In this document: piece after piece, positions 3,967 to 32,870 of the stretch
Position numbering within the stretch: the first letter of the stretch is position 1
How the letters are laid out: each line of letters begins with the position of its first letter
Assembly (NCBI GenBank): GCA_029953675.1
Contig: JAMWBK010000005.1
Coordinates: forward strand, 2,666,001-2,730,000
Length of the DNA: 64,000 bases
DNA from: Rhodosorus marinus CCMP1338
Lineage: Eukaryota > Plantae > Rhodophyta
Direction of reading: 5' to 3'
Made by a program: the position numbers and the translations under genes
Notes under the pieces: generated by a model
Database searches by the model: none
What the model saw: only the letters and a program-made list of their open reading frames with translations
Told to the model about the DNA's origin: nothing

Positions 3967-6900
3967 ATGTCCGGTAGGAACGTAACGGCCGGGAGCTCCG
4001 AGTCCGGCTCCCGGAAGGGGCTGTTTTTGGGTGCATCTGGGGCAGACTTGGAGGGTCAGCAGCAGACGAGGGGTAGATTCGGATTGGGTAGGAAGAGCGA
4101 TTCAAGAGAGGCGCTCACCGAGCAGCTGAGGGCGGCATTGGTAGAGAATAAGGACTTGAAAGTCCGGCTGAGAACAGACGCGTTGGAGAGAGATCAATTG
4201 GAGGTGAACAAGAAACAGGTTGCCTCAGAAAATGCTAGAATGCGGCAGGAACGGGAGAGGCTTTCCAGGAGCCTGGCCGACTTCCGTAAAAGGTTTGACA
4301 CGATCTCTGACGAAAATTTTGCCCTGCGCAGAAAGGTGCAGGCAGAAACTCAGGTACGATTGCAACCAAATGAACTTTTTGTGCGCCGTCGAGCGGTTTG
4401 CGCAGGTGCCGTCTTCTGCGCACGTATGCCTCAAAATCATGCTCTCTTCTGCATTCTCTATTCTTGGTTGCGCTTTTGAACGCGGTACCTTCAGCATCGA
4501 GCTCGGTTGCAAGAAGACTTGGAGGACCTCCAGAAGAAGCAAGGGCGGCAAGCTGGGTCGAGACCGCAGTCTGAAGAACAAGCCCAGAAAGCCAACCATC
4601 TCTCGAGGCATAAGCTCGATACCTATGAGGTTAAATCCAAGGCTCTGGAGGATCGGTTATCACGAACAGAGAAGACAGTAGATCAATACAAAGCAGAAAT
4701 CGTGACGCTGAAGCAGAAGGTGCTCCTTCAGCAAAAGAGCTCCGCGAAAGAGATCTTGGAGCTTCAGGAGGCTCTTTCCAAGACTGAGGAGGAGAACCAA
4801 AATTTCCAGAACCTAACTAAGCAGGAGGTCGGAAAAGCTGTTACTTTGCAAGCAGAATTGGCAAAGATTTCGAAACGCTCAGATCTATTTGAGGCGAAGT
4901 GCAGAGAGCAAAGTGCTATGCTTGTGAACTCTTCGCAAAAGTACTCTGAACTGTCCGAGAAATACAATGATCTCGATCGGACGAACGCCAAGCTATATGA
5001 AGAGCACAAACTCTTGAAGGCGAGGACGACGGCTGAGATGAGGGAAATAGACACCAAGGCGCAGACCAACTTAGAGACGTCGAGGAGAGAAGTAGAAGAG
5101 CGTCTGGCAGAGGTCGAAAAGATTAAGGCTAAGCGGCAGGAGGGATACGTTCTTCTTCAGAACGAGTACAAGACTCTTGAGAACGAATTGAACGAGTCAA
5201 ATCGGAAAAATGCAGAAACAATTGAGTCTCTACAACGCGAACGGGACGAATACAAACGCAAATACGAAGGAGCAGATATATCCTTCAGTAGTGCGTCCGA
5301 ACTCGAATCAACTCCCTCAACGAAAAGGTCGACTGTGGCTACTACTACAAGCACACCGAACCTTACCTCTGATGGAGATTCCCAGCAACTAGCAGCGATG
5401 GCGGCAGCGTCGAGCAGAGATGTTAAGGCCGCGAAGGCTAAGTTCCACAAAATTTTGAAGAAAATGGAAAAGGAGAAGAATGACGCTCTCGAAGAGTCGA
5501 GCGTTCTCAGGACCGAGATTTCCCTGACCAAGTCAGAATTGCTGAGTAAGGAGACTCAGAGCACATCTCATGCGAAGCAAATAGACAACCTGAGTTCACA
5601 GCTCGAGCAAGCTGAAGAAGAGAGAAGACGCCTAGTGAGACAACTGGAAACTGTCAAAGACAACCTCAGGGCCTTTAAAGTAGAGAAGGCTGCGGCTAGA
5701 GCAGCTTTGGACGCAAAGGAGAGGGACTTAGTCTACACTGTGGCAGAAAGAGATCGGCTGATGAAAGACTATGACGCAATGGCAAAGCAGTGGAAGTCCA
5801 AAAGCGATCTAGAACACTCGCTGGAGAAGGAAGCGGCAGAGTGGAGAATGGTGATATTCCTTTTACATCCAGGCCACAACTGCAAAATGTGGAAGACTCT
5901 TGCTGACTTTTGTGTTTGAAATCTTTCTGTTTCTGCCATGCAATCGATTGTCTGCACACCTGTACCTGGTTTTGCTGCACAGGAGCACGAGAAAGCTGCC
6001 GCTGATCGGGACAACCTGAGTGAAAAGGTTTCTGACTTGGAAGAAACGCTCCTGTCCATGCAGGAGACCAATGAAACGAGCCTTCAACAACTTAGGGAAA
6101 TGGAGCAGGCGTACTCAATGGTTATGGTCAAACACGATGATATGGCTTCAGAGCTTCGCTTGCGAGGGGAGAACTTGGTGGAGCTTCAGGAGGAAGTGAG
6201 AATCGTGCGGGAGGAGTGCAACGCTGAGAAAGAAAAGGGACGGACCTATCGCGAAGAGCTTGACTCGGCCACCCTAGATAGGGATGGGAAGATCGAGGAA
6301 AATGAACGCTTGGGCGACGAGATCGCAAGACTATCGGAAGACGTAGCGAGGGAGACGGGTGTTTCTGGGTCCCTGGCTGAGGAGAAGGAGGCGCTCCTGA
6401 TCCAGTTTGACACGATGAGGCACTCTCTGGAGAGCAAAGTTGAGGAGTTATCTGGTAGCCTCGATGAAGCGAAGAAAGCTCTAGCTGAGCAAAGGATGGT
6501 CGCAGTAGATCTGAATGCGCGGGGGCGCGAACTCGAAGAAGAAAAGCTAGCTCTTTCACAGGAATTCAAGGTGATCTCCGATCAACACGAGGAGCAAAAG
6601 ACCGTGCTGGTTGCCAAGCTTGATGATCTTACTGCTGATTCAGAGCTGAAGATGACAGAGATAAGGAAAGAGCGGGACAGTGCAGCAGTTCAGCTGGAAC
6701 AAAGCAAATCCGAATCATCGCAGAAACTGCAGATTGTTAGCAAGGAACTAGAAGGCCTGAGGGGTCAACTAGCAGGGCTAGCATTGTCTTTGAAACAGCA
6801 GAAGGAAAGTCACGGTGAGGAAATTCAAAACTTGAAATCAAAGCACGAGGAGGAGAAGGCTCAAATGAAGAAAGAACTGGAAGCTTCCACAAGGACGTTC

Positions 6901-9900
6901 GATGAAGAAAAAGTTGCGGTTCTTGGTCAGCTGCGGATGGCGAGCACGGACTTTGAGAGCGAGAAGTCGCAACTCAAAGAGCAGTTACTGCTAGTGACTG
7001 CCGATTTCGAGAAGTCCAAATCGGAATGGAGCTCGTTGGAGATGAACTATGAGCGGCAAACGACACAGCTCAAAGATGCACTGGCAAAGGAGAGCGGCGA
7101 TCACGAGCGTGAGAGAGCGGAGTTTGCAGATAATCTTCATGCGAGTTCTGAACTGGTTGAGAAGGAGAGGGGCGAGTTTGCTGAACAGCTTGCTCAACTT
7201 AAGCAACACCATGAGCACGAGAAGTCGGACCTCAGTCGGCGGCTCCAGGATGTCACCAACCTTTACGAGCAGGAAAAGGAACAGACAGCGAGAAGGATTG
7301 ATGAAGTTACCTTGGACTTAACGGCGAAAACGGTTGAGGCAGAAGAACTGGTGAGAGCAACCGAGGATTTGGGGAGCCAGAACAAGGCGTTGACGGACTC
7401 TTTGGAGCAGACGAGCGCTGAACTGAACCTTGAAATCAACGAGCTTAGAACTGAAGTAGAACGAGTGTCCAAAGAGCGTGAAATGCTTGAGGCTAAGTTG
7501 GAGGAACATAGGCAAGCCATGGAGGTCGCTTCAGAGAAGGTTATTGTGACAACAGCAGGATTAGAAGCACTTAGGACTCAAGCGCAAGACAAGGAGGAAT
7601 CCCTTCTTCTTTCTAATCAAAATCTGGAAAAAGAAAACCGCGGCCTGGTTCAGGATATCGAGGCTTCCAGAGAACGAGAAATTCAGCTGCAGAAATCCCT
7701 GGAGCAAGTTAGCGGAGACCTTGACGTAACCAAGGACAACCTGAAGCAGCAGACCACCGCTTTAACTCTTGAATGTGAGGCGCTTGCAGGTGATAAGATC
7801 GCATTGCAATCCGACCTCGTGAGTCTTGACAATCAAGTCCGTGAACTCGAGGCTGTGTCAGTAGCTCAGCTGAAATCTTCAGAGCTTGAAGCGGATAAAC
7901 TGAACACAGCACTAGCGTCCGCCGAGACAGAGAACACTTCCTTGAAGGAGAAGTTAGTGGAACTTGAGGGGCGCCTCGGCGTGCTCGATAGAGACCTTGT
8001 CCAGGAACGAGAAATTCTCAGGTCTTCCGCCGAAACACATGCATCGTCAATTCGTGAAAAGGAGCAATCTCATCGCGTTGCATCAGAAGAACACGCTACA
8101 GCGCTGGCACTAGTAACGGCGCAAGTCCATGAATACGAGAAAGAACTTCATGACGAAAAAGAGTCTACGAAGTACTTGCAAGAGCAGTTGGGTGTGACGG
8201 AAAAGTCGCTCACTCAGGCGAAAGATGAAGTGTCTATTTTAACAGAAAACTTGAAGCAAGCGGAGCGCAGATCCGCGGAGGAGTTCGAGAAGATGGAAGA
8301 CGCGGCAGCGAAAGGGCAGGCGTTAGAGACCAAACTCCAACAATCACGCGAAGCGAACGCCGAGAAGCAAGCCGAGAATGACAAGCTGAGATCAGAGTTG
8401 CTGCTAATCAGCACAAAATCAACAGAAGGAGATGAGGTGAGAAATTAGTCAGCGAAACGTCTGATTGACTGGGCTGAGAACTAATTGGGGCCTATATCTA
8501 TGCATCTCAGCTTCTGGAGCAGTTGAATCATCGTGTTGCCCAGTCAGAGGAACAGAACGTTAGGTTGAAAGCAAAGATCGACCAACTGGCTATTGAGAGG
8601 GAATCCTCAGAGGAGGAGCAGCGGATGACTGCAATTGAGCGTGATAGGGCCAAAACGCTTGCGGATAAGAAGGATCAGGATATAAAGGAATTGGAACGGC
8701 AAATCGTTGCTCTATCCACTGCAAATCTTTCTCTGGAGGGCGAAGAGGAGAAGATTCGCCTAGAACTGTCCAGTGCGATGGAGAAGATCGCGGCACTCGA
8801 AAAGGAGAGGACTTCAGAAATCTCCGAGAGAGAAGCAATCGAGAAGGGGGCTGAGGTCGACAGAAATGCCCACGCTGACGAGGTTGCAATCTTAAAGGGG
8901 CAGATTGACGAGCTCAATGAGGAACGGAACAGCCTCACACGGGCCGCTGCAGCACGGGATGAGCAAGTTCAGTCTTTGCTACTAGAGAAACAGACTCTGG
9001 AACAGAGGATTGCGAGCCTCAGCTCCGAAATCGAGGATCAGCAGCAATCCGCGGAAGCAGCGTTCAAGAACCTAGAGGCAGCCTCGCAAGCTGCCGCCAA
9101 AACTGCTAATGAGGAGCTTGAGAAGGAGAGGAAGGAGCTGCAGGTGCTTTCTGCACAGCTAGCGGTTTCCGAGGAAGGCGCGGCGAGTGTGGGGGATCAG
9201 CTAGCCAGGGTGCAGGCTGAAGTGAAATCCTCCGCGTTAAGCGTCAAGAAGTTGGAAGATGAGCTATCAGCAGCTCGAGACGAACGGGAAGACGTGCAAG
9301 AAACCCTTAGCCGAGACCTAGCAGAAGCGTCTGAGGAACTCGTCAAAGCGAAAGATCAACTTCGCATGAACATTGAGGACTTGAACAGCGCCAACCAAGC
9401 TGCTACTATAATGCAGACAGAATTGGAAGAGGAGAAGTCTCGGTTCAGGGCAGTATCGGAAGAATTGTCAATCAATAAGCAAAAACTCAGCGAAGTTTCT
9501 CAGCTGCTTCTGATCGCCAAGCAGCAGGGTGAGGGCGACCATGAGGCGTTGACGGAGTTAGAAAACCAACTGAAGAACGTGAGAGAGCAAGTTGCGGTCT
9601 CCAGAAAAGAACTAGAAGAATCTTCGCAGGAGCTTGCACAGTCTCAAGCTCTCTACAATGAGTCTAGTCAGCAGCTATCGGCGTGCAGGGTGGAATTGAA
9701 GACTACTTTGGATGATTTGACGCAGGACAGATCTCAGCTACAGACAGCGGTTATGGAGCTCGAGCAATCGAGAGGAACAGCTGCGGGCCTGTCCGATGAA
9801 CTTGAGCTTTCACAGAAGCAGGTAGAGGACCTTCGAGAAGAGCTGGGAACCTCGGCGGAGCTGCTTAACAAAACAAATGCCGAGATGTCCTCCAGAACAC

Positions 9901-11717
9901 TTCAAGCGACCCAGCTTGCGGAACTTCTAAACGACTCTGAAAAGCAGCTTTCATACGTCTCCGAGGAGCTTGCGGCGACTAAGCTGAAGCTCAGCGAGTT
10001 AGGCGGGGACCTAGAAGAGTCGAGGAAGGAGTCGGAAACTAAGTCAGCAGAGGTAGCAGCTGCGAAACGTGAAACTGGTGACATTGCAGAGGAACTCGCT
10101 GAGAAGGAGACTCAATATACCGCTGCGTTTGAGGAATTGACACTTCTCAAAACCCAACTAGAGAATACGCTCTGTGAATTGCAGAGCGAGAAGCTAGAGC
10201 TTAGTACAACTGCTGAGGAATTGAGCCTGTCGAGGAAGGAAGTGGAGACATTGTCTATCCACTTAGTAGCCTCGAGGAATACAGCAGAAGGGTTGTCTGT
10301 ACAACTTAGTGGGGCTCAGGAAGAGCTGGAAGGTGCTCGAAAGATGCTGGCTGTGAAGGAGGAGGAGTTGGGACTGATGGGATCGGATCTGGAATCCACC
10401 AGGCAGAAAGCGCTCGAAGCAGATCGTGGAGCTTCAGGGCAGCTGAAGAATCTTCAATCTGAGTTGGAGGAATCTCAGACGGAGATCATGCTCCTTACGA
10501 AGGAGCGGGATACGGCCAAACTGAACGCAAGTATTGAGCAGGATACACTGAATGAAGAAATTAAGGAGCTCATGGAAAAGAACGAGGGTATTGAGAAGGT
10601 TGCGGCGGAGCTGAGGACTCAGGTTTCCACTGGAGCGGCGGAGGTACTCACTGTTAAGACCGCTTTGGAAGACATCGAGATGGACAGTAGGCGAAGAATT
10701 GACGAGCTAACCTCCAAGAATAACATCTTAGAAGGGCAGCTCACCGAGGCCAAGAAGACAAGCGAACTTTTGCAGGATACGATGCAGAAAGACTTCAACG
10801 ACCTGGAGGCTAAGTTCGTAGCCCTTGGTGCTGACCTCGAAAATGAAAAGGGGAAAGCACAAGCTCTAGAGCGCGAAAGAGACGTCGAGAAGGAATCCAG
10901 GAGCGTGGAAGCCACTGACTATCAGAAACTCGTGGCTTCTTTGGAGGCACAGATGGCTGATGCCAAGGTCAGCGCGGAGGATGAAAGAATGGAGTTTTTG
11001 CGCACTCGCCAAGATCTGGAAAGCAAATTGAAGGCCTTAGAGGAGAAGGAGAACAATCTAACCGCGGCAAACATGGAGATGCGCGAATCGTTTGAGGCGA
11101 AGGAGAAGGTTCGTGCAGAGCAACGGAGCGCGCTTGAGACGCGATTGAATGAAACGGAGGCTGAAACAGTTTCCCTCCGGACCGAGCTTGACGAGGCGAA
11201 TACAACGATCCGAAACCTGAAACTCGAAACGGAGACTGAAACAGACAAACAGCATAGGGCGTTGGCGAAATCCGAGAAGGAGGTTGCGAGACTTACAAGT
11301 GAGACCGAGGAGTTCCGAAGGGCTGCTGGAAATATGGTTCCGGTGACTGAGATTGAGGTCCTGCAAACCCAGCTTTCGGAATCACAAGCTACCGAGGAAG
11401 TCGTCCGGTCTCAAGTGGCATCTCAGAAACGGGAGATTGAGCGACTTGCTTCCGAAAAGAACTTGCTATCACAGCGGCTGGGCCTAAGCGTGCCTGTAGC
11501 GGAACTCGAGGCTATGAAGCGAACGGCGGAAGCTGCGCTTGCTGAGAAGGAGGAGCTGCTGGAACAAAAGCGCAATCTGTCGCAGGAGATGGATGAAATT
11601 CAGACGGAGCGAAACGAGCTCATCAACGAACTCATTACGACGAAGGTCGACCTTGCCAAGGTTCACGACGACTTTTTGAAACACAAAGGCGAGAAGAAGA
11701 AAAAGAGCAAGAAGTAA
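3967..11717 (+). CDS. Giant coiled-coil protein (~2,467 aa; exons 3967-4353, 4495-5850, 5983-8436, 8511-11717)
   Basis: Four ORFs join in frame through GT...AG introns 4354-4494, 5851-5982 and 8437-8510. Composition is E/K/L/Q-rich heptad throughout, with an S/T-rich break (STPSTKRSTVATTTSTPN) and the C-terminus ELITTKVDLAK...KHKGEKKKKSKK. Confidence 0.85.
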
Positions 11718-23802: not shown

Positions 23803-24932
23803 CTCCCCTCGCTCTTGTGCCATAGGGGAAGTTCTCTCTATGAAGCTAAGACCGGACATCAATGTAACTGTCCGATCCTTGGTGAGTGCCTTTATGAAAA
23901 TGTCCGCGATCATCTCGTTCGTACAGATCGGCATTACGGTACGCTGGTGACACCGCTTGCTCTACCTCCAGGTCCTCCCTTGCCGCTATAGTCAGTAGTA
24001 TTCGGACACTGGAGAAGCAACAATTGGGGCGAACACGTCCTCGCAGTCTACTCCTTTGCTTCTGCGCGAATCCTCGAGCACGAGTCGCGCTGTAAAACGC
24101 TGTAATGACCCGTCGCGGTTTTTTCTTAACTTTCAGGATTAGCCGAGAGCCCAGGATCTTCGCAGATCGAGGTACTCTATCCCTGTGAACCAGTTCCCAC
24201 GCCTGGTTCGCCCGCAGGGATCCGATTTCTTCCGCTGCCGCACACCTCCAGTCGTCTGCGTACTCGCTCTCGATCGCCTCACTCCAGGACTCCAGATCCG
24301 GTACGTCATAAAGCGAATTTCCCTTCCGCACAAGATTGATCGGTATCTCCTTCACGCCAATTTGCTGATTAATCGCTCTTCTCAGACCCATTTTCTTCGC
24401 AGTAAAGACATCCTCGGACACGCGCCCAGTGTCGGGATTGTCGAAATTCGTTTGACTGCGGGTCGTAGATTCTAGCAACATGGGAATCTCTGACCGTCAT
24501 GAGAATCCCGGTGCCTCTCCTGCTTTGCAAATTGCCCATCTTCCCGGGTACCGTGAGTTTGTAAGTAATCTGACTGCCGAATGGGTACATGTTGCTAACG
24601 TTAGCTGCACGCATCTAACACATTCCTCCGGGCTCTTTCTACCCAGGAACTTCCGGATGTTGATGCCGTTGACAACCGTGTGCAATGCTTCCGGCCAGAA
24701 GTCGTCTGGCAGCCCACTGTCGAACATCGTGCCGCGCAACCTTTCAGTCACCGTCCTCACTAGCCGCTCCGCCATCCCAATGCCGGGAAAAATATGTCTG
24801 TCGCACAGGGGGTCCCATGTCAACCCCAAATCTCGCAGGAGGGGTTTCATGCCCTTGTATTCGAGTGCGTTTTCACTCTTAGTTTCTTCACCTCCGCCTT
24901 ATGGATCGCTCCGGAAGTCGGAGAGCTTCGGC

Positions 24933-25430
24933 TAGTGTCTGTGCAGTGACATCGCTGTACCACTGCCGGACGGGAGAGGTGGCGTCAAATACATTGGTTT
25001 ATTTGTGGATGAAGCTACCTGATGGTTCGGGGCATACGCCCTGGAGCACAAGAGTTTGGTCGACGAAGCTTTCCGCAAACATGTTATGCTACTACGAACG
25101 CAGCTACTACGCAGAGAAACCCGCGAAGCGGAGAAAGTGGACCAACTCAGCATCAAGTGACATCAATGCAGGAGAATAGAAGAAAAGGAGCGGTAGAAGT
25201 GTCACGTGCTACGGATGCGGTAAATATGGACACATCCGCGTGGATGTCGTGAAGAGCAGGGCAAGGGCAAGACTGAGGAGGAAACGCCAACGAGGAAGTT
25301 TCACGGGGGCCATGTTGCTCTCGAATCAAGGGAACATCAACTGGACCAGTCTATGTATGGACCTGGAAGGATTGTACAAAACAAGGCAATCCAGAAGCGT
25401 GAAGTCCGAGAAGCTTGAGAAACCCGATAA
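24933..25430 (+). mobile_element. Plus-strand (inverted) Copia fragments: integrase N-half, Gag zinc-knuckle, Gag segment
   Basis: The plus strand reads CLCSDIAVPLPDGRGGVKYIGLFVDEAT*WFGAYALEHKSLVDEAFRK (rve core, from 24936), then CYGCGKYGHIRVD (knuckle, from 25207), then 25330-25428, a diverged copy of minus-strand 25583-25690. Confidence 0.85.
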
Positions 25431-26427
25431 GGCAGAGAAAAGCGCCCTGCTTCTCCGGACATCCACGCGGATGTGTGTTTACGGCATCCGGAGCATATGA
25501 GCACCTCTACGAAACTTTTTCTTTTATTCTTCTCGCATCGTTGTCACGTGATGCTGAGTTGCGTCCACTTTCTCCTCCTTCTGGGGTTTCTCAAGCTTCT
25601 CGGACTTCACGCTTCTGCACGCTTCTGGATTGCCTCGTCTTGTACAATCCTTCCAGGCCCCTTCATAGGCTGGTCCAGTTGATGTTCCTGTCCTTGTACG
25701 AGCAGTAGTATTCCTCCTGCTCTTCCAACTCTTCCGAAGTACGGGTAGCACTGCCCAAACCTCGTGTGGGGCTCCCTCCTTAGATGAGGATAGCGTTATA
25801 TCCAATGCTGGTCCTTCCAGCACCTGCGAGAATACCGCTGAGACGATACGTGTCGGCGTCTTTGGCGTGTCCAGGTTGTCAATCACCTCCCTGAGACCTT
25901 TCAAATCGAGAAAAGTCTCGACCCGGAAGCGTCAGTGCCTAAGGGAAAGTTACAACTCCTTCTCTCCTCTGAACACAGAGGGCAGCTTGAAGACTATCAG
26001 TCGGCCGTCCGCGTCCGAGGAACTCCCCCACGTCCAAACAACCATATCGCCTTCCCGTCCATTGTCCCACACTCTGGACTTTTTATAAGTCAATTTATCT
26101 AATTTTTCCAGATATAAAACATATATAGTCTATAAATCATTAAATATGAATAAATATACTCCTAAATAAAAGATCATATCTTTTCCGAACCAAATTTGCA
26201 CTTTTTATGTCCATGGGTCGACTAATTTGTGACTTCCTATCTTTAATTTAAAATGAATTGATGCTAGAATATTCTTTAAATAGGAATGCAAAAGAGTTGT
26301 GTGGAGAGGCCGAACTGGATGGGAGGAAGAGGATGATCGACTATGACCGTTTGGGGTATTTTCTAAGGAGCGTTTACTTCATTATTCGAGAAACAAAAGG
26401 GGAAGTAGGGTACTAGAATCGTTTAAG

Positions 26428-28802
26428 ATGGATGAACCTCGACTTGGGACCGTTGAATCGATTCCGATCTTCAGGCCCGACGTTGGAGAAGGTGAAGACG
26501 ACCTGCTTGTATTTGTACAAGAGAATGAGCGGGAGTTGAACGAGTTTGGTGGGATAAGGATAGACCCTCCATCGTCTTGGAATCTTCCACAGGTAAATCT
26601 TCACGAGCCTCCTCGGGGTGACAACGTCAAGATCAATGCCAAGGGGTTCACGCCGTTCTCGCCGCGAGCTGAGGAAAACGGGACTCAGGATCAGGGCAAA
26701 AGAAATCGGACTGCTCAGAAACGATTAAGAATACCTGTGCGAGATTTTCGAATAATGGATGTGCTTAAAAGGAATGAGCTGCTTTCGAAGAGCCGAAGTT
26801 TGTCGTCGGTCTACCCTCCGCTTGCATCACACGCTGATCTGGAGGCACTATATTGGGAGCTTAACGCTCAAAATAATTCTGAAACTAACAACGCAATGAT
26901 GTGTACATACTACGCTAATGAACCAACGAAGAAACACTACGTGCAGAGCAACCCAGAAACCACTGCTCGAAACAACTGGCACTGCGGAACCATCTGGAAT
27001 CATCCGCTTTCCCCTCTGCGCTCCGTCACAAAACCCTCCCCAAAGCAGGAGATATCTTTTTCACAGTTTTCGAATAGAAAAAACTGGACAAAAAGTCCAT
27101 ATGATCGAAACACGCTCATATTCAACCACTTCGGCTGCAGAAAAGCCATCTACGTGCTTCCTCCTTCTGACTCTGATGCCTTCGAGAGGTAAGCTCTGAG
27201 AATATACTGAAAACGACGCCGGCCTGATCTTCTTTAATCCCAATTGCTGACCGTCGTTCCGGCTGTTGCATTGCGTCTGCGAAAAGGCTATGCGAGGACA
27301 AGGGCATTTCGCCATCAAGCGATCAAGCCGCAGCGATCTCTCCACCCGACCTGATCCGAAGATATGGGTTTAAAAACCTGCGAAAGTCACTCTTGAAGCC
27401 ACAAAGTTACTTGGTCGTCGCTGCTGGTAGCTACTGCCTCAACGTGGATTTGGGCTTCAATGTTCATGAAACTGCTACCTTTTCGATTCCGTCTTGGTAA
27501 GGCTCCAATAGCCTCCGCGTCGGTTTTGAGACAGGATCGGGTGTCTTCTAGTGGCTCACCTTTGCTGATGCTTTAAGAAATCAGTCTCAATGGTTTCAAA
27601 GCTCACTTCACCCTCAATTATGCCGCGTCCTGAGCGGGAAGAAGATCACTTAATCGGTGCTTGAACTCAACGTGGATGCTGACGATCTGAATTCTACTGT
27701 ATGTTTCTCCGCAGGTTGGTTGGAGTGGATGGATCTCTGAAGAAGAAACTTCCTTATGAATTCATGTTACATCAATCCATCCTTGAGCATGGAAAGAGGA
27801 ATAGAGGATACGAGTCAAAGATAAGTAAACCGCTAGTGGAGTCTGGAAGAAGAGTATTCAAACAACATGAGGTGAGTGCTTTCGTCTATCTCTTCCTTGA
27901 TGAGTCCTGCAGTGTTCACCGTCCCGGCCAGGATTATAGAAGACTGAGAGACGAGGAATTCCCCTCTGGTTGTATAGGAGCTCATCACATCGGCTAGGAA
28001 GCGAGGTGTTCCGTGTACGTCCTTGGAGGATGCGGGTCCGGACGTCAAGTCCGCGATCTCTGCGAGCCGAAAGTTATTCGAAGGCGTTGGAGAGGATCTG
28101 ACGGAACCCTTGGATCCTCGATGCTCGATTTGTGGATACTGGCCCCACTACTCGTTCTTAGCAAGACTAAGCGCCGGTTCTTCTAAAGTTTTCTGCAGCG
28201 AGCACGGTCTCGAGCAGCTCCTTGAGTCTGGCACAGATATCTCTGGGCTTGTAGTTATTTACGCGCATCCTGCGAGGGAGTTGATGAGAATTCTGAAAGA
28301 GGTTTGTACCATTCTGAGCTGGCAGGTCTCAACTCATGAACCCTACGGTCGAGTTTTGACTGTCTCGCATTTGCAGGCTTTAGGGCAGGACGCCGATGGG
28401 ATGATGACCAGCTCAATTCTAGAACCGACCGAGGACGGAGAAGTTGACAGCGGTACAGAATCGGTTCCGGCACCGAAAAAGCGGAAAATGCCATCTGTCG
28501 AGAGCACGAGCAAAGCAGCGCGTGCAAAGAAAGACGTTGAAGACCCGCTCTTAAGGGAAGATGGCGAGGTGCCCGCCGAGACGGAAAAGGTCGAGCCGGT
28601 CAAGAACGGAATTGTACAGAGCAGAAGCAAGCCGTTATCTGATGCGGCACGGAGAAGCTCGAAGGTGGAGAATAAGACTACATCTGCGTCGATGAATTCT
28701 GCGAAAAACGCAATGCAGAGGATGTGGCAAATGCGCCAGCAAAAGTCACGGACGAAACGGGCCAACCCTGATTCGCAACCTGTGCCGAAGGACGGCGATT
28801 AA
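26428..28802 (+). CDS. JmjN-JmjC-zf-C5HC2 (KDM5/JARID-family) protein, apparently catalytically dead (multi-exon)
   Basis: JmjN: IPIFRP...FGGIRIDPPSSW. JmjC: LEALYW, NHFGCRKAIYVLPP, AISPPDLIRRYG, LKPQSYLVVAAGSYCLNVDLGFNVHETATF. Zinc finger: CSICGYWPHYSF...VFCSEH. The C-terminal tail is basic and low-complexity. Confidence 0.85.
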
Positions 28803-29558: not shown

Positions 29559-32500
29559 TCACACGTCGACGCCGTGTACTCGTATACGATAAAGACAAGT
29601 GAAATCGCCGCCGTGGTTGTCCATGATCTGCACTCGAATGGCCCTCGACGGCAGGAGTACCTTCAGTTCATCCGGAACCTCAAAATATTGCATATGGGAA
29701 TCCAATTCACTGATTGAATACTCTATTTCGCCGAAGAAGTACTCGATCGCATCCGTGGAATCGTTCAACCTCGCCCGATCAGCGGGATACCCATAGATTC
29801 GAATTGATCGCGGCGCAGACGCGAGGCTGAAGGCGACTGACCTGTGAGCATGCTCCACGGTGAAAGCGTCTACAATAGCTGGTCTGGCAAGGTGTATCGT
29901 GATGTTGCTCGCTTGTCCTTGAAATCCCCAACACTTTCCAAGAGCAATGTCCGGCTGAGGCAAGAAGCAGGTCGGGGTTATCAACTTGCCACGTGGGAGA
30001 GCTAGGAACTAAATCTAGGCGGAACCTTGTTTTTGCACTTACTGTTATCGCCATTGAAGGAGAGTTTGGGAGGCCCATAACAAAATCGGTTTTGTATCGT
30101 CCTAAAAGAGTCAAGGCTCTCTCCTTGAACGCGTTAACGTATTGGTAGGCGTATGATGGGCTGGTCCGGACGATGTAAGCGCCTGCTGATTGCAGCGCAA
30201 AGTCTGGACGTCCGCCCTTGTCGGCGATTACTCTCTCGAACACTTCTTGTCCCATTTCTTCGCGAGTAAGCTTTTGTCGAGGGCTAATCTTTGCATTAAT
30301 CTACGTAGTGCAAAGAAACTCCTGTTATTGGCTATCACACGTGTATCAGATCACTGCGAGTGTATTCGTCCTCGGAGCAAGAAGATACCTTCCTAATCTC
30401 GTCCTGAATAACTCGTATGACTTGATCCTCAATCTCGTCCAGAGAGAGGCTCTCCTTGAGCTCCTTGACAGCATTGTCCAACTCGCCTCGAGATACATAC
30501 CTAGGTCGAGACCGCGCTCTCCCCAGGGTTCTGACTAAGCCCTTCGATATGTCCTCCACACGCTTGATTTGCCTTTGCTGCCAGGAGCTGAGAATCCTCT
30601 GCACCGAGTACCTCACGCGCTTAAGTCCGTCTTCGGTACGCTGCTTCTTCGCAACATACTCCTCGACAACAGAATTCGAAGAAGCGCTGGTTTTTTTTCT
30701 GACTTTCGAGAGTTCTTCCTTAATCTAATACGTCAGGTACGAGCATGCGTTAGACATGATACAACTCTCCCCTTAGCGCGTAAAAGTGTTTGAGCAAAAA
30801 CCTAGCAGCCGAAGAAGATTCAATTTCGACTACAGTGACTAAAGCAATCACCCACCTCCTCCTCTTCTGCAGCGATGATTTCGGAGACTTTGTCACTGAT
30901 ACTCCTTATGGATTCAGAAACGTTCGCAGAAACTTTGTCCATCTCAGACACAATGAGCGCAGTAGCTTCTTGCACCTTATCCTTGGGCACGTCAAAAGCA
31001 GCAGTTACACCGCCCTTTAAATCTCTCAGAAACCCTAGTTGCTTTAGCTGTACATCTCCAGCGACCCTGAAGAATTCGCTCCGGACTCTGTCGATGGAGC
31101 TCGATGCTTTCTCGCTGCGCTCTCGCAAGTCCTGAAGGGCGGCTTCCTTCAACTGCGCCTGCTTTTCCCTGCCTTTCGTAATTGCGCTTTGAAGCTAGAA
31201 AAGCAAATCACATTGCTGTTAGTTTTTGTGAAGAAGCGTCACGTGAAGATCTTAAAAATACCTTCGCTTTTTCCTCCGAAATAAATTGCCGAATTTGTTC
31301 TTCTATATCTTGGTCACCTCTCAGGCTCTTCAAGTCTTCCAATGCGCGAGCAAACTCTTCCTTCGATACAAATCTGGATCGGTCCGTTACATGCCCAAAA
31401 ACTCTTGAGACCTTCTGACCAGCTCGTACTGTGTAGGTCGCGATAGATCCTCCTATGGCTCCGAAGTATTCGACAGGGTAGGACAGCACCTTCTGTTGCC
31501 ATCCCGTGAAAGCTTTCCCGTTGCTAGAGATCCATTCTCCCGCGCGGTTGATAGCTCCGGCCACAGTCTTGAACGCAGCAGATTCTGAGATCGAAGGCAG
31601 CTCCATCGGAATATATGGTAGTTTGAAGTTTAGGCTCCCCAGCACCTTTTTGAGAGGTTCGAGGACCTTCTGAGGAACACGTATACTGCGCAGAGCCGCC
31701 CCAGTCCGAGTCCAGGCTCTGAAGTCGACGGGAGTTTTAGTAATCGAAAGCGAGACCGGGAGGCCGTAGATACGAAAGCTGGGATGGCCTAGATCCTACC
31801 TGACTATTGGATCTTGGAATGACGACCTTGTCATTGATATTCGATCCCTGATGCTCATGGACTCTGCTGCCATGCGGGCGTGGGGAGCGAACAGAACGGC
31901 AATGAGCAGCGCACAGATAAGCATAATGCCCATAATGATTAGAGGGTGGTTTGATTCTGATGTTGCGAAGCTCTTCACACCAAGCCAAGACGATTCCAGC
32001 GGACCCTGCAAATAGAGGTTGATGCATGATCGTGAAAAGTATCAGGAATTGGTACGGGTAATTTTGGCAAAATCAAGACGGCAGGTTTCTAGTTTCACGT
32101 ACCCGCGATAGCCTTGGTCGTTGTGCGAGCTCGGAAATTGAGAGCCTTCTCCAATTCCTGATTTTCTGTGGTGTCTGTTTTAGCACTTCTCGGGAAGTCT
32201 CCAACGCAAATCGCACTGAAGTGCCAAGCGAGTTTCTTGCCTTTCGGACAATGGACACTGCAACCATTTCATCTCTTTCGTCGCCGAAGGCATCCTCATT
32301 TTCTTCGATTTCGTTTTCGACAACTTCAACCTCGTCCTCAATAAACTCTTCGTCATCTGCAATCACAAGAATAGGCGTGGCTAAGAGAGTGTTGTTCAAG
32401 TGATCACGGAGGTGATTATGGTTAAAGCTTACCTTCCGCGATCTTGATTGGGTTTGGAGGTTTTTCAGCAGCAGAACGCAAAACGAAATCAGCAATCAAC

Positions 32501-32870
32501 GAAGAAAACAGACGAAGAAATGCGCGGGGGGCGAAGATCTTCATCTTACCGGCTCTTCAGTTTGAGTACTTTCGTAGACATAAGCCCCTTTATACACAGA
32601 CAGATATTCGGCTTGATCTCCTCCAGAGGCTGCGGGTGCTCTTCCAGTTGACCCGGATCTGTTATGCAATCGGTGGAATTGCTCACTACGGTCAGTAAAA
32701 CAACCTCAGTCGAAAATCCAGACACCCAAATAAAAGCCGATTCAACAAAAGCAAATCATTCCCAACCCGAAAAAAAAGAAGAATCAGAAGCCCAGCAATA
32801 GGACGAACGCACAACCGCACACTTACCCACTTGTCGCAGGAGGTTTTCTTCCTGATCGCTTAGGACCCAT
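29559..32870 (-). CDS. SUN-domain (Sad1/UNC-84) inner nuclear membrane protein (multi-exon)
   Basis: C-terminal SUN domain PDFALQSAGA...GKCWGFQG...DAFTVEH...SAPR...DNHGGDFTCLYRIRVHG, preceded by coiled coils and a transmembrane segment (IIMGIMLICALLIAVLF). The basic N-terminus MGPKRSGRKPP starts at the ATG at 32870. Confidence 0.9.

Follow-up and report, generated by a model that had tools for sequence, protein, structure and literature searches.

Animals (JARID2) and fungi are known to possess JmjC-domain proteins that have lost catalysis and persist as regulators. The core of JARID2 consists of JmjN, JmjC and C5HC2-type domains with lost Fe(II) ligands, and the N-terminal half of the protein also binds H2AK119ub. 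PRC2-, nucleosome- and ubiquitin-binding elements have been assigned to this N-terminal region (PMC11241480), and PRC2 is also present in red algae (C. merolae; PMC8788455). The fungal 'Lid2 complex subunit' of the fission yeast Schizosaccharomyces octosporus (Lid2) has a degenerate JmjC motif (W-Q-Q-S-P), but retains the distal histidine and the full KDM5 architecture (ARID, PHD, C5HC2, PLU-1). KDM5 and JMJ14 proteins share a fold of four modules (JmjN, JmjC, helical domain and a complete C5HC2 finger with two zinc sites), with neither ARID nor PHD between JmjN and JmjC in JMJ14, whereas KDM4 (JMJD2) proteins are active enzymes without the KDM5-type helical domain and C5HC2 finger. Red algae possess, in addition, active-looking JmjN-JmjC-zinc-finger proteins, here labelled group X (Gracilariopsis chorda BWQ96_04654 and BWQ96_01086, a protein of Madagascaria MMETSP1450 and further relatives), which retain H-x-E-D...H, all pocket residues and the full set of finger cysteines.

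The window, i.e., the whole 64,000-nucleotide stretch of Rhodosorus marinus DNA analysed here, harbours on its plus strand a five-exon gene (26428-28802) which, according to the gene model, encodes a JmjC-type protein of 625 aa. The translation corresponds to NCBI NDN08_001791 of R. marinus (100 % identity over 625 aa), the product of which is currently annotated only as hypothetical or JmjC-domain protein. No second JmjC gene was found in the window by tblastn. The reading frame is intact through the five exons, all introns are of the GT-AG type, and an in-frame stop codon lies upstream of the ATG. Exon 1 (26428-27188, aa 1-254) contains the start codon, the JmjN domain, a conserved linker and the first half of the JmjC domain, the second half of which is encoded in exon 2 (27287-27496, aa 254-324). 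The intervening intron 1 (27189-27286; 98 nt, GT-AG) is removed in transcript L002. Intron 2 (27497-27714; 218 nt) carries an in-frame TAA directly at the 5' splice site. The helical domain begins in exon 3 (27715-27871, aa 324-376) and continues in exon 4 (27978-28301, aa 377-484), which also encodes the zinc finger, while exon 5 (28377-28802, aa 485-625) encodes a disordered K/E/S-rich tail followed by the stop codon.

Spliced MMETSP transcripts of a sister Rhodosorus strain use the same junctions, including that of exons 1 and 2, and at their 5' end they follow the genome colinearly, with the same start codon. One MMETSP isoform retains intron 2 and would yield a product of 324 aa with JmjN and JmjC only. 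The protein model, for which the earlier note had called for verification by cDNA, is thus matched by transcripts. Since both ligand-bearing motifs lie within exons and the junctions are confirmed by the sister-strain transcripts, no splice form restores H-x-E...H, and rescue of the triad by an alternative isoform is ruled out.

Besides the sister strain, one further orthologue was found (P0003, JGI sample 3300016877; E 1.1e-74, 37 % identity), which is full-length and likewise devoid of the ligands. In word-indexed searches, neither the full protein nor the clade alignment retrieved anything beyond the protein itself and the sister-strain fragment; P0003 required an exhaustive search, which revealed no close relatives outside these two transcriptomes. 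The convergent neighbour of the gene encodes a Sad1/UNC (SUN) domain protein (29559-32870, minus strand), and the same tail-to-tail neighbour is present in both related transcript contigs (sister strain and P0003), a shared context that supports orthology. Between the Rhodosorus strains, dS is 0.287 and dN 0.071, and the resulting dN/dS of 0.25 (0.20 for the JmjC part alone) indicates moderate rather than strong constraint on the coding sequence. The CDS shares 89 % nucleotide identity between strains, compared to 71-76 % for intron 2 and the 3'UTR. As judged from these comparisons, the gene has been kept under purifying selection since before the divergence of Rhodosorus and the P0003 lineage.

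A decaying pseudogene, or an artefact of annotation, is thereby an exceedingly improbable source of the degenerate domain, even though very few homologues are known and the Pfam JmjC score of the window protein (17 bits; 34 bits for P0003) falls below the curated cut-off of 24 bits. Against it stand the intact frame with canonical splice sites, the spliced transcripts of the sister strain, the dN/dS of 0.25 together with the higher conservation of the CDS relative to intron and UTR, and a full-length orthologue at 37 % identity with conserved synteny. The recent pseudogene which the earlier note had considered as a possible outcome is contradicted by the transcripts, the dN/dS value and the distant orthologue.

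All residues quoted in the earlier note were found in the gene model at the positions given here, and its central claim, replacement of all three Fe(II) ligands of the JmjC domain, is confirmed by HMMER and MAFFT alignments (H to T, E to S, H to C). Opposite the KDM4, KDM5 and JMJ14 sequences, the triad H-x-E...H reads T-x-S...C. The position of W-H-x-E-D is occupied by W-T-K-S-P (27085-27099, aa 220-224; T and S in place of the ligands H and E) and that of the distal Y-H by Y-C (27432-27437, aa 303-304), with the JmjC anchor motifs H-F-G (27127-27135) and G-F-N (27453-27461) nearby. In the HMMER alignment to KDM4C, WHTED lies opposite WTKSP and GYHAGFNHGFN opposite SYCLNVDLGFN; MAFFT alignments of 31 and 37 sequences repeat this pairing against KDM4, KDM5, JMJ14 and the red-algal enzymes. 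The three positions hold T, S and C in the window protein, T, S and F in the sister strain, and Q, H and Y in P0003, the latter having W-Q-K-H-E in place of W-H-x-E-D. The distal position is hence not conserved (C, F or Y among the three orthologues), which rules out the cysteine as a substitute metal ligand.

The replacements extend beyond the triad. Conservation in 85 % or more of the active JmjC enzymes sampled defined a set of 39 catalytic columns, about half of which are changed in all three orthologues. The F preceding W-H is replaced by S in P0003 and by K in the sister strain and the window protein, the W of K-x-W-Y by I in all three, the G-F-N following the distal H by T-L-D (P0003), D-V-D (sister strain) and N-V-D (window protein), and the N of N-F by Y (P0003) or T (both Rhodosorus proteins). 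These four elements are invariant across all sampled active enzymes. At the level of aligned residues, the window protein has thus lost the Fe(II) triad, and several residues of the 2-oxoglutarate pocket are changed as well.

Continued enzymatic activity with unconventional metal ligands or another cofactor could be envisaged from the fold, which is retained at high model confidence, from the purifying selection on the gene, and from the lysine of the H-x-G-x-x-K motif, which is kept in Rhodosorus (K239). However, this lysine is R in P0003, the variation of the ligand positions within the clade (T/T/Q, S/S/H and C/F/Y) cannot be reconciled with a fixed alternative metal site, and the replaced pocket residues (F, W, G-F-N and N) are invariant in the sampled active enzymes; an enzyme of this kind is scarcely credible. 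The protein is a maintained pseudoenzyme: its catalytic residues are lost, yet it is transcribed and under purifying selection across species, as follows from the spliced transcripts, the dN/dS of 0.25 and the syntenic orthologue at 37 % identity.

The JmjN domain (26452-26601, aa 9-58; AF2 pLDDT 88-94) carries the variant G-G-I-R-I-D-P-P instead of the usual G-I/M-C-K/R-I/V-x-P-P. It is followed by a linker of about 70 aa (26599-26775, aa 58-116), which occupies the place of the ARID domain in JARID2 and KDM5 and contains two clade-specific conserved motifs, L-H-E-P-P-x-x-D-N-V-K-x-N-A and R-x-R-x-x-V-R-D-F-R-x-M-D-x-L-x-R-N (invariant columns of the three orthologues). The linker is 90 % identical between the Rhodosorus strains; its AF2 confidence is low and it is predicted to be disordered. 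The JmjC domain (26815-27721, aa 130-326) is distributed over exons 1-3 and split by introns 1 and 2. AF2 pLDDT is 80-96 over JmjN and JmjC, and the pTM of the whole model is 0.66.

Pfam JmjN and zf-C5HC2 have no significant match in the window protein or its orthologues. The finger (28122-28205, aa 425-452; CSICGYWPHYSF...VFCSEH), considered degenerate in the earlier note, lacks the middle C-x-C and the last C-x-C, but only half of it is degenerate: none of the three orthologues deviates from the tetrad C425-x2-C428...C449-x2-H452, and H433 is conserved too. The tail encoded in exon 5 contains a basic P-K-K-R-K motif (28473-28487) and, close to its end, a conserved C-terminal helix predicted by AF2 (28680-28757, aa 586-611). 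The final 40 aa are 93 % identical between strains, compared to 76 % in the remaining tail. A mimic of H3K27 or JARID2-K116 in the tail (S-K-A-A-R-A-K-K) was dismissed: the arginine is located at -2 instead of -1, the sister strain has A-V-R at this place, and P0003 aligns poorly.

Foldseek searches with the AF2 model yielded the catalytic cores of KDM5C, KDM5B, JMJ14, JMJ13 and KDM5A as top matches (E about 1e-17, about 530 aligned columns), the best being KDM5C (5fwj, E 1.7e-17). According to the predicted structure, the four-module fold of the KDM5/JMJ14 type is retained, comprising JmjN, JmjC, the helical domain and a reduced zinc finger. As in JMJ14, neither ARID nor PHD intervenes between JmjN and JmjC. 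The red-algal protein differs from both KDM5 and JMJ14 in its replaced H-x-E...H triad and 2-oxoglutarate pocket residues, in a finger reduced to the single C-x2-C...C-x2-H tetrad, and in the very low sequence similarity of its clade to these enzymes.

Resemblance to KDM4 is found in the JmjC domain and its surroundings. Single-sequence searches of the PDB match KDM4C and KDM4D best, H-F-G and P-P-S-D-S-x-x-F-E-R resemble KDM4 motifs (P-P-x-x-x-x-x-F-E-R type), and the linker between JmjN and JmjC is short in both. On the JmjC core, KDM4 models reach 57.5/45.7/55.5 bits, and 54-65 bits when identical columns are used, and thereby equal the JARID2 models. A KDM4-type rather than a KDM5/group X-type parent, which would still imply a convergently dead enzyme, appears unlikely nevertheless: the predicted fold runs on into a KDM5/JMJ14-type helical domain and finger with conserved C-x2-C...C-x2-H tetrad, KDM4D ranks far below the KDM5/JMJ14 cores in Foldseek (1e-11), and the JmjN domain, the W-H-x-G motif and a colinear full-length profile alignment match group X (see below). 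The equal scores of KDM4 and JARID2 models on the JmjC core run contrary to an origin from group X, which is a candidate parent lineage.

In sequence searches, JARID2 is the best-scoring known protein, with lamprey JARID2 (E 2.8e-11) as best match outside red algae. A profile of the red-algal clade detects human JARID2 (E 1.3e-12, 50 bits) ahead of JMJ14 (30 bits), and KDM5 is not detected at E < 1. The Fe(II) triad and the middle C-x-C of the finger are missing from both proteins, which are presumably both non-catalytic, and P at the fifth position of W-H-x-E-D is common to JARID2 and, on the red-algal side, Rhodosorus only. The segments ETVHF and VFCLE, which the earlier note had given for JARID2, do occur in human JARID2 and were likened to E-T-A-T-F (27468-27482) and VFCSE of the window protein. 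Family-HMM scores point in the same direction, with JARID2 reaching 57 bits compared to 30 for group X on the JmjC core and 19 compared to 3 bits on the helical/finger region. The higher scores of JARID2 models on these two regions are contrary to a group X origin.

A true orthologue of JARID2, older than the divergence of animals from red algae and serving as PRC2 cofactor, would account for these likenesses and is compatible with the presence of PRC2 in red algae (PMC8788455); we nonetheless consider it very doubtful. Pfam ARID was found neither in the window protein nor in its two orthologues (the lamprey JARID2 control gave E 8.8e-11), and with JmjN starting at residue 9 there is no counterpart of the long N-terminal half of JARID2 (about 500-550 aa) that harbours the PRC2-binding region. 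JARID2 is much closer to JMJ14 (198 bits) and KDM5A (193 bits) than to the window protein (50-59 bits only), the JmjN domain prefers group X by 8-19 bits, and the JARID2-type matches, where named, are all from animals. Ancient orthology would also require loss in nearly all other eukaryotes.

Moreover, the preference for JARID2 is matched by a control, since dead Lid2 also scores best on JARID2 models. Family-HMM scoring favours JARID2 if all columns are used, but this discrimination is lost after masking, and the Lid2 control behaves alike. In distance trees, Lid2 is the sister of the dead red-algal clade in 167 of 200 bootstraps, a grouping that most plausibly reflects long-branch attraction among degenerate sequences. 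Once Lid2 and P0027 are removed, JARID2 becomes the sister in 86 of 200, and this grouping, which depends on the catalytic columns, drops to about 0 of 200 after masking of the 39 columns, an outcome that is not final given that all trees were built by distance methods. Long branches (Lid2, P0027 and a divergent KDM4-like sequence) attract each other in these trees, which give no stable answer and were rejected as a means of placing the clade. The phylogeny proposed in the earlier note, run as a distance analysis, revealed that the JARID2 grouping is not robust. As far as the sequence comparisons go, JARID2 orthology of the window protein is not supported, and independent inactivation accounts for the resemblance better than shared ancestry does. 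Of the two readings offered by the earlier note, the deep JARID2-like lineage is not supported in view of the missing ARID and N-terminal region and the vanishing tree grouping, while the evidence agrees with the other, an algal JmjC chromatin adaptor that lost activity convergently, the adaptor role being putative.

Several features point to the active group X family of the same phylum instead. The JmjN domain scores highest on the group X HMM (44.7 bits for the window protein, 26.8 for P0003 and 47.4 for the sister strain), compared to 29.1 (KDM4), 27.4 (JARID2) and 23.2 bits (KDM5) for the window JmjN on the other family HMMs. The variant JmjN motif G-G/A-I/V-R-I-D-P-P and a motif preceding JmjC, W-H-x-G-N/T-I/V, are present in all three orthologues and most group X members, and absent from the 27 other sequences sampled. 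In hhalign, the alignment with group X is colinear over 446 columns (residues 12-483; score 192, E 5.6e-25), whereas that with JARID2 (score 179) covers JmjC to finger only. Pfam JmjN and C5HC2 models fail to detect either the dead clade or group X. JmjN domain, W-H-x-G-N/T-I/V motif and full-length colinearity, all of them sequence features, thus point to group X as the candidate source. The JmjC-core HMM scores do not favour group X, and the grouping has no support in the distance trees, where masking leaves about 40 % of bootstraps that join the dead clade to the whole of group X or to some of its members, and the others scatter. The dead clade differs from group X in lacking the triad, several pocket residues and the full set of finger cysteines.

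Taken together, the protein is probably a red-algal pseudo-demethylase which derives, within red algae, from the active group X enzymes, became catalytically dead separately from animal JARID2 and fungal Lid2, and may have a non-catalytic role as nuclear chromatin adaptor, the latter being suggested by retention of the fold and by conservation. The folded core of JmjN, JmjC and finger could form a module that binds a histone tail or another protein, and additional contacts may come from the basic tail as well as from the conserved linker motifs and C-terminal helix. A functional counterpart of JARID2, i.e., a dead JmjC protein docking on or tuning PRC2 or another histone-methylation complex, whether descended from an ancient JARID2-like lineage or recruited independently, seems in our judgement quite improbable. 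JARID2 as top sequence match and the occurrence of PRC2 in red algae speak for such a counterpart; no JARID2-specific domain is present in the protein. A link of the red-algal protein to PRC2 is possible and finds no support here.

Because searches and distance trees alike draw degenerate JmjC domains together, a best match to JARID2 is no evidence of orthology. As it stands, the dead JmjC protein is lineage-restricted. If the group X-derived pseudo-demethylase is the correct reading, it would represent a separately arisen red-algal example of a dead JmjC regulator, and the KDM5-type scaffold would be seen to outlast catalysis repeatedly across eukaryotic supergroups. Should the protein bind PRC2 or another chromatin complex, Rhodosorus would offer a simple unicellular system for the control of histone methylation by a pseudo-demethylase.

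The window carries eukaryotic DNA whose introns are short and of the GT-AG type, and reading its three forward frames yielded a JmjC-like gene of five exons on the + strand (26428–27188, 27287–27496, 27715–27871, 27978–28301 and 28377–28802). Its 625-aa product is identical over the full length (100 %) to NCBI "hypothetical protein NDN08_001791 [Rhodosorus marinus]" of this unicellular red alga (contig JAMWBK010000005.1, assembly GCA_029953675.1), presently annotated as hypothetical only. The residues quoted for this gene in the earlier note were found exactly in place; a search of the whole window revealed no second JmjC gene.

HMMER alignment with KDM4C pairs W-H-T-E-D with W-T-K-S-P and G-Y-H-A-G-F-N-H-G-F-N with S-Y-C-L-N-V-D-L-G-F-N, and two multiple alignments (31 and 37 sequences from KDM4, KDM5, JMJ14, JARID2 and red-algal enzymes) show the same register. 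All three Fe(II) ligands are replaced (H to T, E to S, H to C), as the earlier note had claimed. Substitutions extend to other columns whose conservation in the active enzymes sampled is at least 85 %: F in front of W-H, W in K-x-W-Y, G-F-N following the distal His, and N in N-F. Pfam recognized JmjC weakly (17 bits versus a 24-bit cut-off) and detected no JmjN, ARID or zf-C5HC2 domain. Judged from these alignments, the active site is dead.

AlphaFold2 (pTM 0.66) models JmjN (residues 9–58) and residues 130–500 with confidence, shows 59–128 and 502–588 as disordered, and predicts a C-terminal helix at 586–611. The best Foldseek matches are the catalytic cores of KDM5C, KDM5B, JMJ14, JMJ13 and KDM5A (E around 1e-17 across some 530 aligned columns), with KDM4D ranking far lower. 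The fold is retained in this predicted structure; the catalytic pocket is lost in the alignments above. The zinc finger is degenerate, as also noted earlier: a C425-x2-C428…C449-x2-H452 tetrad, probably forming one zinc site, is invariant, while the other cysteine pairs are absent. Strong conservation occurs in unexpected parts of the protein. Between strains, the "disordered" linker shows 90 % identity, and it contains two motifs (L-H-E-P-P-x-x-D-N-V-K-x-N-A and R-x-R-x-x-V-R-D-F-R-x-M-D-x-L-x-R-N) invariant out to a 37 %-identical orthologue (P0003). At the C-terminus, identity between strains is 93 % over the final 40 residues, compared to 76 % for the remaining tail, and a basic P-K-K-R-K motif is present.

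An exhaustive search of 1.84 billion representatives returned just 30 matches at E ≤1e-3, two of them close: a pair of MMETSP transcript products from another Rhodosorus strain (P0002/P0033; 85 % amino-acid identity) and P0003, from a complete 673-aa MMETSP transcript of a second organism (37 % identity, E 1.1e-74). In the sister-strain transcript contig L002, introns 1, 3 and 4 are spliced out as in the genome model and intron 2 is retained; a fully spliced isoform (P0033) also exists. Since these transcripts share the junctions of the gene model, the latter is cDNA-verified in the sister strain, a check proposed in the earlier note. The retained intron 2 (window 27497–27714; L002 1049–1267, MMETSP Transcript_40933) carries, in both strains, an in-frame TAA right at its 5' splice site, which would give a 324-aa product limited to JmjN and JmjC; retention could be regulated or merely reflect unspliced RNA. 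Between strains, dS is 0.287 and dN 0.071 (Nei-Gojobori; dN/dS 0.25, JmjC part 0.20), with nucleotide identities of 89 % (CDS), 76 % (intron 2) and 71 % (3'UTR). The gene is maintained, expressed and under purifying selection. The ligand positions read Q, H and Y in P0003, and the third is F in the sister strain; the loss is therefore old, the replacement residues themselves not being conserved.

The JmjC gene has a Sad1/UNC (SUN) domain gene on the – strand as its tail-to-tail neighbour, in the genome (~29559–32870) as well as in both MMETSP transcript contigs (L002 2937–3623; L004 2527–5037), supporting orthology of the JmjC genes and indicating microsynteny conserved between 37 %-identical orthologues. 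In both transcript contigs the two genes were assembled together, and the convergent 3' ends possibly overlap. Other called genes flanking the locus (genome contig L001, 1205–6999 and 18360–22375) encode an HMGL-like enzyme, a WD40 protein, an amine oxidase-like flavoprotein and the large subunit of ribonucleotide reductase, an unremarkable housekeeping setting that includes no cluster of chromatin genes. Just upstream, several – strand ORFs (23846–25250), judged by eye to resemble Ty1/Copia-type polyprotein (integrase-, RT-like), look like a degraded retroelement; nested inverted repeats (25230–25688; arms of 74, 49 and 33 nt with 91, 92 and 88 % complementarity) separate this remnant from the JmjC gene's AT-rich promoter region. 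Three consecutive + strand ORFs (470, 836 and 1064 aa; 4507–11717) encoding E/K/L/Q-rich coiled coil are probably exons of one giant gene and account for the strong + strand purine skew at 4–12 kb (AT skew 0.22–0.27).

Orthology to JARID2, one of two readings in the earlier note, is not supported. The best match outside red algae is indeed lamprey JARID2 (E 2.8e-11), a profile of the three orthologues scores 50 bits with human JARID2 versus 30 with JMJ14 and 26 with KDM4D (no KDM5 at E <1), and the JARID2 segments ETVHF and VFCLE cited in the earlier note are real. However, the defining ARID domain is absent (Pfam), as is the N-terminal half bearing the PRC2-, nucleosome- and ubiquitin-binding elements of JARID2 (PMC11241480), JmjN beginning at residue 9 and an in-frame stop preceding the start codon. 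Moreover, JARID2 matches JMJ14 (198 bits) and KDM5A (193 bits) far better than NDN08_001791. Neighbour-joining trees place the three orthologues as sister to the degenerate JmjC of Schizosaccharomyces octosporus Lid2 (167/200 bootstraps), which has full KDM5 architecture; omitting Lid2 and a degenerate 502-aa protein (P0027), JARID2 is sister in just 86/200, and this grouping vanishes upon masking 39 columns conserved in active enzymes. Family HMMs on identical columns likewise favour JARID2 (65–70 bits) over KDM4 (54–65), a red-algal family termed group X (51–59) and KDM5 (40–50), but after masking the first three are indistinguishable, and the Lid2 control also scores highest on the JARID2 model. 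JARID2 models therefore attract degenerate JmjC domains in general. Lid2 reads W-Q-Q-S-P and P0027 W-H-V-Q-P and S-Y-T; P as the fifth residue of the W-H-x-E-D motif, shared with most JARID2 sequences and Rhodosorus, recurs in separate dead lineages.

Three active-looking matches (P0010, P0014, P0022) share with the dead orthologues a variant JmjN (G-G/A-I/V-R-I-D-P-P) and W-H-x-G-N/T-I/V, at the site where W-N-L-N-N-L stands in all other families. Searching with the alignment of these three retrieved Gracilariopsis chorda BWQ96_04654 and BWQ96_01086 and Madagascaria MMETSP1450, which shows this JmjN-JmjC-zinc-finger family (group X) to be red-algal. Like the dead orthologues it is missed by the Pfam JmjN and C5HC2 models; unlike them it looks active. 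The group X JmjN HMM yields 44.7, 26.8 and 47.4 bits on the three orthologues, those of JARID2, KDM4 and KDM5 at most 29, and hhalign is colinear over residues 12–483 (score 192, E 5.6e-25), as compared to JARID2 (score 179, JmjC to finger only). A red-algal origin, with group X as the better candidate parent, is proposed with moderate confidence; group X is not favoured by the scores of the JmjC core and the finger, and trees give no stable placement. A KDM4-like parent is possible, as KDM4 HMMs score high and H-F-G and P-P-S-D-S-x-x-F-E-R are present.

The other reading of the earlier note, a convergent dead adaptor, is supported. NDN08_001791 may be nuclear, given its basic motif, and non-catalytic; its JmjN/JmjC/finger core would serve for binding, and partners would contact the linker motifs and the C-terminal helix. 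Possible roles are the reading or shielding of a methylated histone tail, competition with active group X enzymes and the scaffolding of a complex. PRC2 is present in red algae (PMC8788455); nothing in this analysis supports a link to it. Dead JmjC proteins that are maintained have precedents (JARID2 and others), and NDN08_001791 is a new, lineage-restricted one.
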